A stretch of DNA of 64,000 nucleotides from Piromyces finnis finn (taxonomy: Eukaryota; Fungi; Neocallimastigomycota): NCBI GenBank assembly GCA_002104945.1, contig MCFH01000019.1, positions 434,001 through 498,000 of the forward strand, in the 5' to 3' direction. Below the pieces are notes generated by a model, which worked only from the letters and a program-made list of their open reading frames with translations, was not told the DNA's origin and made no database searches. The stretch's first letter is position 1, and each line of letters starts with the position of its first letter. The position numbers and the translations under genes are program-made. Shown piece by piece: positions 23,813 to 56,999 of the stretch.

Positions 23813-24433
23813 TTAAACCATGTTTAATGGACTGTTTTCTAATGAATCTTTCTTAGATCTCTTGACCCAAAGGAAGACACCAGCTGAAGAAAGAGCAGCT
23901 GCACCTGCAATACCGGCAGCAGCTAAAGTACCATCGGTACCTTCTTCATCATCAGCTGAATCTTCAGCATTGTCTTCGGCATCAAGATCATCAACATTCT
24001 TGATATCATCTCCACCTTCAACATCACCTTCATCATTGGCATTAGCATAATCATCTGAAGCTTCACCTGCATCAGCTGCATCAGCTGCATCATTTGGTGA
24101 TTCTCCATAATCATCGGAAGCTTCACCTGCTTCTGCATCTGGATTAACACCATCAGCATCACCTGGTGTAATGTCTGATGAATCTGGATTTTCATTTGAA
24201 TCACCAATTCCTGGAATATCATCAACATTAGCATTATCTGAAATATCAGCATTATCTAAAGCATCATCTTCCTTGTCTGAACCGATATCGGCAACATCTC
24301 CAACCTTAGATGGAATATCAGAAATGTCATCCTTAGTAGCTGGAGCAATATCTTCATCATCAGAAATTTCATTACTGTTAGCGAAAGCTAAAGCAGCAAG
24401 AGTAGTGAATAATAAAATACTTTGGAACTTCAT
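23813..24433 (-). CDS. Acidic secreted protein with C-terminal TM anchor, copy 1 (206 aa)
   Basis: N-terminal hydrophobic signal peptide, D/E-rich ectodomain with 2x GEASDDY, TM LAAAGIAGAAALSSAGVFLWV followed by KRSKK. Confidence 0.88.
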   Translation of the reverse strand: MKFQSILLFTTLAALAFANSNEISDDEDIAPATKDDISDIPSKVGDVADIGSDKEDDALDNADISDNANVDDIPGIGDSNENPDSSDITPGDADGVNPDAEAGEASDDYGESPNDAADAADAGEASDDYANANDEGDVEGGDDIKNVDDLDAEDNAEDSADDEEGTDGTLAAAGIAGAAALSSAGVFLWVKRSKKDSLENSPLNMV

Positions 24434-24904
24434 TTTTGATTAGTTAGAAATTTGTATAAAAAAAAATAGTTTTAAAAAAATTTTTAGTTAATAGTTTTCT
24501 TTATAATAAATTGATTTTATGTTTATAGAATATATATATTATATTTTATTATAAAATATTAAAATAATATATATATTTTTAAAAATATTCAAAAAATAAT
24601 CAAACGATAATTTCTTATAACTTTAAAATTATAAAAATTGATTAAAAATAATGACAAAAAAATGAAGAAAAATTCAAATGTATTTATATGTTTTATTAAG
24701 CCTATGTTTTATTAATAATAATTAAAAGTTAATATTACTTTTAGCATTTAATCTTGCAAGTAATATCTCTTATATTAAAAGCTTATTTTTTAAATAATTA
24801 ATCTTGGAAACTTTGCAAATTTAAAACCATTTTAATTTATTTTTAATGGTAATATTTTTAGTAAATTGATATTAAAACTTTATTACTTATATTTAATAGT
24901 TATT

Positions 24905-25178
24905 GATATATTAAAATAATTTCTTAATGGGAAAATATAAATATTAAATGTAATGATAAAAAAAGCAAAAATTATAGTATTAATAATAAAACTAATAATA
25001 ACAAAAACATGAAAATATTTATTAAAATAATAATTATTATGGATATATTAAAATAATTTCTTAATGGGAAAATATAAATATTAAATGTAATGATAAAAAA
25101 AGCAAAAATTATGGTATTAATAATAAAACTAATAATAACAAAAACATGAAAATATTTATTAAAATAATAATTATTATG
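24905..25178. repeat. 137-bp direct tandem duplication
   Basis: GATATATTAAAATAATTTCTTAATGGG...ATTATTATG starts at 24905 and again at 25042. Confidence 0.85.
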
Positions 25179-54600: not shown

Positions 54601-55643
54601 TCCATTTCCAGGCCTTCTTAGGATTATGACTCTTCATATACTCACATCCTGTTTTAATCCAATGAAGATATTCTTGCTTCCTAAATTCATTACATCTTTT
54701 GTGGATGTAATCAATGAGCTTACGGTAGATTTTAATTCTTTTAATAAATTCATCTATATCATAAATTCTTTCTTTTTTAAATCTCTTATACAACTTCATT
54801 TTGATTTTTTGGAGATTAAAAATTTGTTGTGAAATATGAAATGAAGACTTTATAACATTATTTGCTGAAGTAATACTGAGCTCGTCTGCAATTGAAAAAG
54901 CAGTTGAAGTAAACTCTTTGGAAAGTTCATCTGTAGAAACATTAGGATCGTTGAATTTTGCTGAAAGTATTTGGAATTTATTATGACTGAGAATAGATTC
55001 CTTTTCCTCAATACATTTTAATCTATTCCATTTCAGAATTTTCTTAGGAACATTAAAGTCATTAGAAAAATCTTCCATAGGAATAATTTTACCATTAATA
55101 AGAAGTGGCTTATGGTCTGATACAGGATAAAAATTATTTATAAATGATCCTGAGTGAATAAGATCTTTCATCTTCGAATTGATAAGAGCATGGTCAATGT
55201 CGGAAGATTGTTCACCTCGAGTCCAAGAGATAGTCGACCCTCTAAGCGGAAGAATTTCCCAATCTCCTAATCCATTAGTTGATAACCAGTTGGATAATTT
55301 TACTTTAGACATATTAAAATCACCAACAAGAATCGATGGATGGGATGAATGAGTTTGTAACCACAAGCGAACTTCTAACTTTGCATGATCAACATAGATG
55401 TTGTGATGACTATGAGGCATATAAACATTACCAATCGAGCATTTGAATCTATTCCAAAGACTAAAAGTATAAATAGAAATAATATACTTTCCAGAGAAGT
55501 TTTCAAGTGAGGCTTGACATGAATTATGAAAACCTAAATATAAACCTCTCATTCCCGGAACTGATTCGTCAGCTTTCTTGAAAAAGTGTCTATAGTTTCG
55601 CAAAGTAACACGACAAGGATAATCTTTTTTTACGATTCATCCT
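51684..55643 (-). mobile_element. Near-complete APE-endonuclease/RT non-LTR retrotransposon (LINE copy E)
   Basis: Poly-A end (poly-T on + to 51714), same 3'UTR as A and B. Candidate TSD CTATTATTT at 51675-51683 and 55644-55652. Confidence 0.95.
51959..55603 (-). CDS. LINE ORF: APE endonuclease (N-terminus apparently missing) + RT + Cys/His knuckle, 1214 aa
   Basis: APE motifs NVYMP, ILVGDFN, SWTRG...SDIDH and SDHKP, plus the full RT motif set. The listed start is a TTG and there is no in-frame ATG at the 5' end. Confidence 0.92.
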   Translation of the reverse strand: MRNYRHFFKKADESVPGMRGLYLGFHNSCQASLENFSGKYIISIYTFSLWNRFKCSIGNVYMPHSHHNIYVDHAKLEVRLWLQTHSSHPSILVGDFNMSKVKLSNWLSTNGLGDWEILPLRGSTISWTRGEQSSDIDHALINSKMKDLIHSGSFINNFYPVSDHKPLLINGKIIPMEDFSNDFNVPKKILKWNRLKCIEEKESILSHNKFQILSAKFNDPNVSTDELSKEFTSTAFSIADELSITSANNVIKSSFHISQQIFNLQKIKMKLYKRFKKERIYDIDEFIKRIKIYRKLIDYIHKRCNEFRKQEYLHWIKTGCEYMKSHNPKKAWKWIKKTAKIGKDSFFIAQPIKNKNGELVVTTEEQLDVWHDHFENLASDPSGVSLDLEHWYEEPTNKRFSLPMLDEWNINQDISIDEVKSAILSTPNYKASGPDGIPIEFYKALIPSSNDSNNATDNNSSGNTTSDNDAHGLNFILKLFNRIWDGDFPNSWNESSIVSIPKKGDLTDCDNYRGISLINNGIKLISKIVTTRISEYGLKNNFIRPEQFGFRKKEESISLFISIQEICRRRQLDNKETYLAFLDLRKAYDSVPIGNILHKLDCLGIRGKSLQFIKNLYLTSKANVKLDGQFSKSFDVKKGVRQGCPLSPILFNLFINDIFKECEDLGVSLGDTRCCGGLFADDIVICAPTRGCLKKMLRRVNEWALYNEMEFGIQKCSTMVIRPESIENQNKRDPTFYLAGQPIPTTDCYTYLGVPFDKNLSLKPVIKALNNKVLKGLFSVSKFLRNPNIPIPFKKLVLNSQVISRVSYFAPLLGSNKARSRIAQKHVNKGIRWVAGVHKAVSFISLYSISKDLNIPPLSAKCALAQVRCFNKWKNSNCIISHLVNYIPKFRKYTWCKSSRTLDKKLKKHGDVKAVKNFYWKDLKGNSIKAQYYDDNKFSETKDFIKLCYEYPEFAYGFYWLLKARSGYKLDARVAKAAKFVDPVCPNYCPCCKCGDQSIKHWLLDCPTFRDIRIKHYDSIVQLLNFFSQRNSNSPINNNENVNISRDSNNINSNSNNSSNNNSNSNNSNNNNNRNNNISNDSNSEDNNSNLDSNLVNDSNSSNNPVNINVYDYSSVCSEIFKFLLGGRSFNNINYNSREWKELCKRQIQSGTNEGTPFLTVTAELLTKIMPFAIGQQWSMFKRFEATSKSVNAEETVRQARRASATNGDHNFVP

Positions 55644-56270
55644 CTATTATTTCTTATTATATTTTAAGTTTTTAGTTTTTGTTTACTGGCAATTATCAAA
55701 AAAAAAAAAAGCATGGCCATGATGAGAATACTTTTTGGATAAATTAATTTTATTTGGAGAATTTCATTAATAAAAAAACATTTACACTTTATTTCTTTCA
55801 ATAATCTATTATACATTCTTATTTATTTATTCAATATTGTATCTTTATATATCTTTTAATAATAACAATCATATACACAAAGAAATAATATCAATTACAA
55901 TTACCCACAGAAAGAAAAATAAACAATTACACAAAATAACAAATAATTAATTTCATCATTTTTTTTAAAGATATTTATATTTTAAAAGTTTTTATTATAT
56001 AAAAATTAATAATATTCAATTACTAAAAAAATTATTGATTAGATAATATTGATATATATATATATGGTATGTAAAATATATTTTAAATATATTTACACAA
56101 TAAATTATAAAAAAAAAATTAAAAAATTTCAAAACGACTAATAATCGTTTGCTTTTTTGATATGTTAATTATTGCGAATGTTGATGAAGAATAATTTTTC
56201 AATTATTTCTACAAAAAAAACGATATTGAATTGTTTGATTAAAGGATTAATATATGCTAAATTAGAAAAC

Positions 56271-56999
56271 TTAAACCATAGTAATTTGAGTACGAACACT
56301 TTGTAAACCAGCGCGCTTAGATTTCTTGATGTAATAGAAGACACCAGCAGAAGAAAGAGCAGCGGCACCAGCAAGACCACTAGCAACCTTTCCACTAGTA
56401 GAAAGACCTTCATCTTCATCATCAGAAGTAACATCATTGGCATTAGCACTGTCAATACCATCAACTTGGTCAATACCATCAGCATTACCGTAATCATCAG
56501 AAGCTTCACCATCATCTACAACATCTTGTGGGTTGACATCAGCATTATCAATTTGATCAATTTGATCAGTGCTTCCATAATCATCTGAAGCTTCACCGTT
56601 GTCAACATTTTGACCGCTAATACCTTCAGCACTTGGTGGAGTAACACCAGTGTTGTCAGAGTATGGTGGGACTGAATCAACACTTGGATTAGTGTTAACA
56701 GAATCAGTAACTGGGTTAGAGTTAACAGAGTCCATAGATGGTGGTGGAATAGAATCAGTAGTTGGGACATTGTTATCAACAGATGGGAAAGATGGTGGAA
56801 CAATAACTGGAGTTTCTGGAGCTTCTGGAGTTTCTACTGGAGCCATGTTGGTATCAATTTCTGGTTCAGAACTTTCTCCAAAACCATCTTCAAGTCCAAC
56901 ACCACTAATGTTGTCTTCAATATCAGAAACATCTAAACCGTTACCTAAAGTTAAGGTAAGAGTGGCAGCTAATAATAATAAAGCGTTGTAGAATTTCAT
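56271..56999 (-). CDS. Acidic, Pro/Thr/Ser-rich anchored surface protein, distant paralog (242 aa)
   Basis: Signal peptide, mucin-like segment, 2x GEASDDYG, TM GLAGAAALSSAGVFYYI followed by KKSK. Confidence 0.88.
   Translation of the reverse strand: MKFYNALLLLAATLTLTLGNGLDVSDIEDNISGVGLEDGFGESSEPEIDTNMAPVETPEAPETPVIVPPSFPSVDNNVPTTDSIPPPSMDSVNSNPVTDSVNTNPSVDSVPPYSDNTGVTPPSAEGISGQNVDNGEASDDYGSTDQIDQIDNADVNPQDVVDDGEASDDYGNADGIDQVDGIDSANANDVTSDDEDEGLSTSGKVASGLAGAAALSSAGVFYYIKKSKRAGLQSVRTQITMV

Follow-up and report, generated by a model that had tools for sequence, protein, structure and literature searches.

Anaerobic gut fungi are major degraders of plant fibre, and in molecular terms their cell surface is almost unknown. 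One system described for these organisms is the cellulosome scaffoldin ScaA, a repeat-rich protein of more than 500 kDa that occurs with and without transmembrane (TM) anchors and that binds a fungal dockerin with a KD of about 1 µM (PMC8262932). The ScaA fragment given for Piromyces finnis in Table S1 of the same study consists of GYY...KC...C units that are rich in Cys, Tyr, Lys and Asn (PMC8262932). Here, we describe a family of small acidic membrane proteins encoded by six genes, designated A to F, which lie between positions 23,813 and 56,999 of a 64,000-nucleotide stretch of the P. finnis genome (assembly GCA_002104945.1, contig MCFH01000019.1, positions 434,001 to 498,000 of the forward strand), referred to below as the window. 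We tentatively read the encoded proteins, with a probability of roughly 0.45, as abundant, lineage-specific small type I plasma-membrane polyanions that carry two short linear motifs and a conserved anchor/export module. Besides ScaA, the Mid2/Mtl1 and Wsc proteins of fungi, sulfated peptides and the syndecans serve as points of comparison.

Architecture and conservation of the family

All six open reading frames (ORFs) were confirmed as intact and intronless in an ORF check of the 64-kb window. Genes A (23813-24433, minus strand), B (25812-26432, minus strand), C (28693-29313, plus strand) and D (37900-38520, minus strand) encode one and the same protein of 206 amino acids (aa), gene E (40143-40721, plus strand) encodes a protein of 192 aa, and gene F (56271-56999, minus strand) encodes a protein of 242 aa (P0016) that belongs to a subfamily characterised by an ectodomain rich in Pro and Ser and by the tail end ..SVRTQITMV. 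As the first-pass annotation of the locus had described in outline, every one of these proteins has a signal peptide, with a cleavage site of the A-x-A type, an acidic ectodomain with two (G/A)E(A/N)SDDY(G/A) motifs, a single TM segment of 20-21 residues containing AGAAALSSAG(V/I)F, and a basic tail of 16-18 aa that starts with K(R/K)SK(K/R) and ends in MV or MA. In gene A, the signal peptide is encoded by positions 24377-24433, the motifs by 24104-24127 and 24044-24067, the TM segment by 23864-23926 and the tail by 23816-23863. The motifs, TM segment and tail are located at 40425-40448 and 40488-40511, 40608-40670, and 40671-40718 in gene E, and at 56574-56597 and 56487-56510, 56328-56387, and 56274-56327 in gene F. 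We counted 12 occurrences of the tetrapeptide SDDY in a six-frame translation of the 64-kb window, every one of them inside the six genes, while composition-preserving shuffles yielded 0.28 occurrences on average and never more than 2. The motif is therefore not a product of chance.

The ectodomains of A to F contain neither Cys nor Trp, and Asp and Glu together account for 24-37% of their residues. Their Tyr residues are confined to the motifs in A to E, with one additional Tyr in F, and the combined content of Ser and Thr is 10-12% in A to E and 19% in F. A model computed with AlphaFold2 from an alignment of 47 sequences showed helices only at the signal peptide (residues 3-19) and the TM segment (residues 206-226), the remainder being unstructured with a mean predicted local distance difference test (pLDDT) score of 55; the pLDDT of the ESM Atlas model of F is 0.40. 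The C-terminal region does not conform to the pattern of a glycosylphosphatidylinositol anchor, since the hydrophobic helix is followed by a conserved basic tail of 14-24 aa across the family.

The first-pass annotation had further noted that the motif and the TM segment survive where the rest of the ectodomain can no longer be aligned. Indeed, A and F are 37% identical overall and the rates of nonsynonymous (dN) and synonymous (dS) substitution in their ectodomains are about equal, and the same contrast between motif, TM segment and remaining ectodomain was found over the 47 family members described below. In the comparison of A with E, dN/dS was 0.05 over the last 45 codons, which encode the TM segment and the tail, and 0.48 over the ectodomain, although these are rough values, because a GC content at third codon positions of ~15-18% compresses dS. 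As judged from these substitution patterns, the family is under purifying selection.

A word-index search returned 21 relatives, none of which carries the name of a function. We then used a profile (alignment A2) of the C-terminal module, which extends from the first motif to the end of the protein, against 1.84 billion representative proteins of any length. This search gave 41 matches, among them 39 true clusters of proteins of 117-304 aa that share a common architecture. The matches P0034 (2595 aa) and P0049 (628 aa) were rejected: both are bacterial proteins with Ig/cadherin-like repeats, and their only likeness to the profile is a chance match to the strand motif '...GAA.SSAGVF.W'. All members with a named source belong to Neocallimastix, Anaeromyces or Piromyces (Neocallimastigomycota). 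Local scans of the respective loci with hidden Markov models added unannotated members, namely one in Neocallimastix californiae, two in a second P. finnis cluster and two in Anaeromyces. The family-wide comparisons given here cover 47 members. The motif and the TM segment are conserved among these gut-fungal proteins. On the basis of these searches, the family is restricted to anaerobic gut fungi and has been undescribed so far.

Several of these relatives required a correction of the deposited annotation. The additional N. californiae gene (L001:4802-5398, minus strand) is absent from the called genes. The ortholog of F in Neocallimastix 'constans' (L002:10001-10840) is an intronless ORF of 279 aa, and the deposited models P0002 (194 aa, N. 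californiae, L001:10001-10615) and P0017 (238 aa, N. 'constans', L002:10001-10840) splice out 30 and 123 nucleotides (nt), respectively. The uninterrupted ORFs encode 204 and 279 aa and match the transcript-derived proteins P0003 and P0015, and the introns of both models therefore look spurious. The second P. finnis cluster is a more divergent head-to-head pair on the same contig, MCFH01000019.1, at 500-521 kb. One of its genes (L005:4084-4623, minus strand) encodes a 179-aa protein whose two ExSDDY motifs adjoin each other and whose tail ends in FNMA. The other (L005:10001-10666, plus strand) encodes a protein of 221 aa in which Asp replaces the Tyr of the motif and which ends in TLV, the last residue being absent from the deposited model P0048.

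None of the domain collections assigned the proteins to a described family. Scans with Pfam, NCBIfam and PHROGs of the window proteins, and with Pfam of all 47 members, gave no family match, and a profile search of the PDB returned only noise with E>0.5. In the ESM Atlas, the nearest entries were unnamed or mucin-like clusters at 0.77-0.82, which is below a meaningful level, and the 206-aa protein had no named match there. Matches to TrbK, the LPXTG anchor and ETRAMP were found at E >=0.03 and were dismissed as chance likenesses of a TM segment followed by a basic tail. We also considered, by eye, an EF-hand or dockerin-type Ca2+ loop for the sequence DDYG...(V/I)(D/N)x-hydrophobic-D, and rejected this candidate because Gly occupies position 3 and A to E do not maintain the spacing.

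Across the 47 members, conservation is concentrated in a few segments. The N-terminus MKF... is conserved, and in most members the mature protein starts with (N/S)-L-E-V-S-D-x-E-D. The motif follows the consensus D-A-G-E-(A/G)-S-D-D-Y-(G/D)-(D/E), with (V/I)-(D/N)-x-hydrophobic-D about 5 residues further on, and it is present in 1-3 copies per protein. Of the 78 motif instances, which were defined by a search pattern in which E and S were fixed, 67 retain the Tyr, and the other 11, which belong to the most divergent members, have Asp in its place. Relative to this position, all instances have D or E at -2 as well as E at -5, 64 have D at -1, and 40 have G at +1. An acidic S-A-D-E-E stretch ahead of the membrane is also conserved. 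Outside these segments, the ectodomain differs freely among the members in length and Pro/Ser content, its share of D+E ranges from 16 to 43%, K and R are nearly absent and often number zero, and neither Cys nor Trp occurs. With their core kept while their surroundings drift, the ExSDDYG elements show the behaviour of short linear motifs that serve binding or modification. The suggestion that SDDY is a binding or modification site is supported at this level.

The TM segment has the form (I/V)-A-A-G-(I/L)-A-G-A-A-A-L-S-S-A-G-(I/V)-F-L-W-V, in which the small residues form several i, i+4 ladders and in which there are A, G and S positions that are invariant or near-invariant in alignments of 23 to 47 members. 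In the tail, the widespread form is K-(R/K)-S-K-R-x-G-L-(E/Q)-S-V-R-(T/S)-Q-I-(S/T)-M-V, as found in F, and the shorter ...L-E-N-S-P-L-N-M-(V/A) of A to E is a derived form. The C-terminus reads [ML][VA] in 42 of the 43 intact members, with S or T at position -2 in 26 members and N in 13.

Gene arrangement and transcription

Genes A to D differ little from one another at the DNA level. A and C are identical, B differs from both by one synonymous change, and D differs from A and C at six positions, all of which are synonymous third positions. B and C are arranged head-to-head within an inverted duplication (25616-29509), whose arms (25616-27050 and 28069-29509) are 99-100% complementary and flank a centre of 1018 nt, and a direct repeat (23754-26476) with a spacing of 1999 nt contains A and B. 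It should be noted that the number of four copies is a count taken from the assembly, in which B and C lie in this 99-100% palindrome. The palindrome and the A/B repeat could stem from very recent duplication, inverted and tandem, or from an artefact of the assembly. D and E also form a head-to-head pair, and the same divergent layout is seen in N. californiae (L001) and in the second P. finnis cluster (L005).

The near-identity of A to D continues for ~270 nt upstream of the ATG, and several blocks of this region are common to E as well. For D, the shared upstream region (38521-38790, minus strand) comprises the 5' untranslated region (UTR) and a putative promoter, with TATA-like A/T blocks just upstream of the ends of the transcript contigs described below. 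This near-identity suggests that the promoter was duplicated together with the genes. The whole window is very AT-rich, with a GC content of 14-40%.

Transcription was assessed with contigs placed on positions 37400-39060, which came from three runs of three studies that are only guessed to be RNA. Of the words that make up the 3.8-kb D-E stretch, the three runs contain a share of ~0.3, which equals the share of that stretch taken up by genes D and E. The contigs are confined to a transcribed unit of gene D (37739-38649, minus strand) with a 5' UTR of ~126-129 nt, a 3' UTR of ~160 nt and no intron, and their summed k-mer depth is 10^3-10^5 in this unit versus 0-95 in its flanks. A variant at 38170 (G>A) in the contigs corresponds to the allele of A, B and C. 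Run X3 yielded an E-type contig that has 256 letters between the positions 38107 and 38406, compared with 298 in D, and E is 14 codons shorter than D; transcripts of E are visible only through their D-like 3' end and this single bridging contig. The presence of D, A/B/C and E variants means that the contigs stem from no fewer than three distinct genes of the cluster. Genes of the D, A/B/C and E types are thus transcribed, in agreement with the expectation of the first-pass annotation that genes of the family are expressed. No matches to the D-E stretch were found in the metatranscriptome run X5.

A high abundance of the transcripts is probable, and only probable, because the runs are only guessed to be RNA and expression levels are poorly reflected in the depth of assembled contigs. 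Most of the homologs from metagenomes reside on contigs of 0.9-1.5 kb, which is about the size of an mRNA. A further contig of 727-755 nt, with a depth of 150-199, was present in all three RNA-like runs and matches only the flanks of D at 37426-37448 and 38641-38677. The 396 letters between these two flanks are unrelated to D, and the contig represents another locus or transcript that shares the outer flanks of D.

Other features of the window include a perfect tandem duplication with a unit of 237 nt (29684-30157) just downstream of gene C, and an ORF of 1218 aa rich in Asn, Lys and Ile (32132-35788, minus strand) between the C and D copies, which has no Pfam match. An intact and intronless gene for glycogen/starch phosphorylase (11843-14218, plus strand; Pfam Phosphorylase, 1068 bits) lies in a locally GC-richer stretch. 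Several copies and pieces, 91-97% alike, of one retrotransposon without long terminal repeats (RVT_1 plus endonuclease) were found at 14876-20737 and 51777-55603. These pieces flank the gene family on both sides and in opposite orientation.

A candidate surface polyanion and competing explanations

We propose that the product that remains after cleavage of the signal peptide would be a membrane-tethered disordered polyanion of ~130-230 residues without Cys and with almost no basic or aromatic residues, the basic cluster of the tail fixing an N-out topology. The terminal hydrophobic pair may be a sorting signal or a signal for export from the endoplasmic reticulum (ER), of the C-terminal valine or di-hydrophobic type, and where position -2 is S or T the end of the tail could perhaps also be a PDZ/GRASP-type ligand. 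The Ala/Gly/Ser faces of the TM helix would pack against helices of the same protein or of a partner. The ectodomains may form an abundant anionic brush at the cell surface, with bulk charge and disorder being selected over sequence, and the two motifs would serve for specific contacts, either by being bound by a partner or by being modified on Ser or Tyr. Their context would be that of a textbook site for tyrosine sulfation or ecto-phosphorylation. The substrate context of tyrosylprotein sulfotransferases was indeed found, with acidic residues within +/-5 of the Tyr, no Lys, Arg or Cys nearby, and a position in a predicted lumenal segment. Furthermore, the copies with an identical product, the co-duplicated promoter and the high contig depth together agree better with a structural product made in bulk than with a receptor of low abundance.

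A number of observations weigh against this proposal. The depth argument is subject to the two reservations stated above, namely that assembled contigs measure expression poorly and that the RNA nature of the runs is a guess. The idea of a C-terminal signal rests on general cell-biology knowledge, from which C-terminal valine and di-hydrophobic ER-export signals are familiar, and the N at position -2 in 13 of 43 members is unfit for a class I PDZ ligand. The replacement of Tyr by Asp in 11 of 78 motif instances implies that a modification of Tyr would not be universal. Lastly, in walled thalli an ectodomain of ~150 residues may be buried in the wall, and the coat role may perhaps apply to zoospores or growing tips only.

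Of the alternatives to a polyanionic coat, a wall stress sensor or mechanosensor of the yeast Mid2/Wsc type, in which a disordered ectodomain would reach across the wall and relay strain to the cytoplasm, survives best, although we regard it as unlikely. Such sensors have the same layout of signal peptide, disordered ectodomain, one TM segment and cytoplasmic tail, and the Anaeromyces member P0032 carries the UniRef label 'Mid2 domain-containing protein'. This label was not reproduced by the Pfam scan, as Mid2, SKG6 and WSC (PF04478, PF08693 and PF01822) gave no match at E<=1 in the 47 members and none at E<=10 in the three window proteins. Moreover, the ectodomain is rich in Asp and Glu instead of Ser and Thr, and the tail measures only 14-24 aa, while the signalling tails of Mid2 and Wsc1 are far longer. 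The high copy number and the transcript depth would also suit a bulk protein better than a sensor.

The faces of small residues on the TM helix could be explained if the proteins were accessory subunits of multi-pass proteins, comparable to receptor activity-modifying proteins, with the TM segment packing on a receptor such as a sugar-sensing class C G-protein-coupled receptor (GPCR) and the tail controlling trafficking. In both P. finnis and N. 'constans', gene F or its ortholog is convergent with a class C GPCR gene of the SBP-7tm_3 type. The P. finnis receptor is encoded by a multi-exon gene (44412-47206, plus strand) with a sugar-binding-protein-like ectodomain and a 7tm_3 domain, and is collinear with its ortholog at L002:14244-18020 (minus strand), which lies next to the F ortholog. 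It is a conserved neighbour of F. In both genomes, the interval from F to the receptor contains a piece of reverse transcriptase from a long interspersed nuclear element (51959-55603 in the window and L002:11818-12226), and a second class C GPCR gene with a sugar-binding-protein-like ectodomain is located at 48983-50908 (minus strand). Given a total of only about 32 class C GPCRs in P. finnis (PMC5168858), the adjacency is unlikely to be due to chance. It may, however, merely reflect inherited gene order, no GPCR neighbour was seen at A to E, at the L005 cluster or at the Anaeromyces members, and the multiple copies and high expression go beyond the need for a receptor subunit. We therefore consider an accessory role of this kind to be quite improbable.

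We attach the same low likelihood to a more far-reaching scenario, in which the family would be a syndecan-like missing membrane link of the gut-fungal surface. The ExSDDYG motifs would then be modified outside the cell, by CotH phosphorylation or Tyr sulfation, and dock dockerin proteins, wall polymers or partner microbes, while the TM segment and the C-terminal ligand would couple to intracellular scaffolds. Gut fungi carry many genes for CotH kinases that are secreted, dockerin-linked or at the surface; the known CotH substrates of Bacillus are basic and not acidic. Ecto-phosphorylation of the motif Ser or Tyr by CotH is as open a possibility as sulfation. An example of a suitable intracellular scaffold would be the focal-adhesion proteins that gut fungi have retained without integrins (PMC5042518).

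A mini-scaffoldin or dockerin receptor, as put forward in the first-pass annotation, would use ExSDDYG as cohesin-like docking sites to hold dockerin-carrying enzymes or free cellulosomes on the membrane. Its attraction lies in the signal peptide and the C-terminal TM segment, in the two copies of a conserved exposed motif that contains nearly the only aromatic residue, and in the limitation of the family to the lineage with fungal cellulosomes. In addition, the attachment of cellulosomes to cells is unresolved and a dockerin signal has been seen on rhizoids and zoospores (PMC8262932). Nevertheless, we judge this explanation to be very improbable. The acidic repeats assumed for fungal scaffoldins are not borne out by the dockerin-binding ScaA fragment, which, compared with the family by eye, consists of the Cys-rich GYY...KC...C repeats mentioned above and is unlike the motif. 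The family members have no Cys, measure 117-304 aa and contain only 1-3 motifs each, and neither a large multi-repeat relative with the module or with motif arrays nor a ScaA-sized protein was matched by the TM/tail profile among the 1.84 billion representatives, which were searched at any length. Membership in the ScaA group was rejected on account of these features of size, Cys content and repeats. A docking role as such is unsupported rather than refuted.

A lumenal polyanion that buffers Ca2+ or other cations in an internal compartment, such as the Golgi, the vacuole or an acidocalcisome-like organelle, is an equally poor prospect. The very high content of Asp and Glu and the near absence of basic residues do point in this direction, and low-affinity, high-capacity Ca2+ buffers have a similar Asp/Glu-rich composition. 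Against this, a KKxx retrieval signal is missing from the tail, the hydrophobic pair conserved at the C-terminus is more in keeping with a signal for export, and bulk buffering needs no conserved specific motifs. The least probable explanation is that of a membrane-tethered precursor from which intramembrane or juxtamembrane cleavage sheds the ectodomain and releases an acidic, possibly Tyr-sulfated peptide with a signalling role, since the rhomboid-substrate-like TM segment with many helix-destabilising small residues, which is conserved far beyond the needs of anchoring, and the DDY-G context of sulfated peptide hormones are set against a lack of dibasic or other processing sites around the motifs, the fact that we know of no fungal tyrosylprotein sulfotransferase, and a strong conservation of the end of the cytoplasmic tail that argues for the intact membrane protein as the functional form.

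Comparison with known systems

The family offers a concrete candidate for three questions, which concern the attachment of cellulosomes to rhizoids and zoospores, the substitute for integrins, and the targets of the abundant extracellular CotH kinases. If it were only a charge coat, it would be a modest addition to the orphan surface proteins of fungi. For practical purposes, the compact promoter and 5' UTR, together with the cassette of signal peptide and TM/tail, could supply parts for expression and surface display in gut fungi, which are hard to engineer, and the conserved C-terminal module might serve as a phylum-specific marker in metatranscriptomes.

With ScaA, the family shares its limitation to the Neocallimastigomycota, its secretion, the C-terminal membrane anchor that some ScaA proteins have, and repeated exposed elements with Tyr. 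The two differ in that ScaA has more than 500 kDa and many Cys-rich repeats, whereas the family members have 12-32 kDa, are free of Cys and contain 1-3 acidic ExSDDYG motifs. Mid2/Mtl1 and Wsc resemble the family in being fungal proteins with a signal peptide, a disordered ectodomain, a single TM segment and a cytoplasmic tail; the acidic ectodomain, the absence of a WSC domain and of any Pfam match, and the tail of 14-24 aa set the family apart from them.

Sulfakinin, with the sequence DDY(SO3H)GHMRF-amide, provides a case in which a sulfated Tyr stands in a DDY-G context (PMC3981819). The family has in common with sulfakinin and with the DY-peptides of plants that Asp-Asp precedes and Gly follows the Tyr, in an acidic segment of the secretory pathway that is free of bases and of Cys. 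Unlike in the sulfated peptides, Asp stands in place of Tyr in some family members, and the likeness spans only five residues.

The syndecans (PF01034) are the best functional analogy, and are meant as an analogue only. There is no homology and no match to PF01034, no Ser-Gly dipeptide occurs in A to E, and the tail ends in [ML][VA] instead of comprising the C1, V and C2 regions with a terminal EFYA; to our knowledge, glycosaminoglycan synthesis is not known in fungi. What the two groups share is an overall design, namely a type I protein with an acidic disordered ectodomain, short acidic motifs that contain Ser, a conserved TM segment of small residues, a basic juxtamembrane stretch, and a conserved hydrophobic C-terminal ligand in a short tail.

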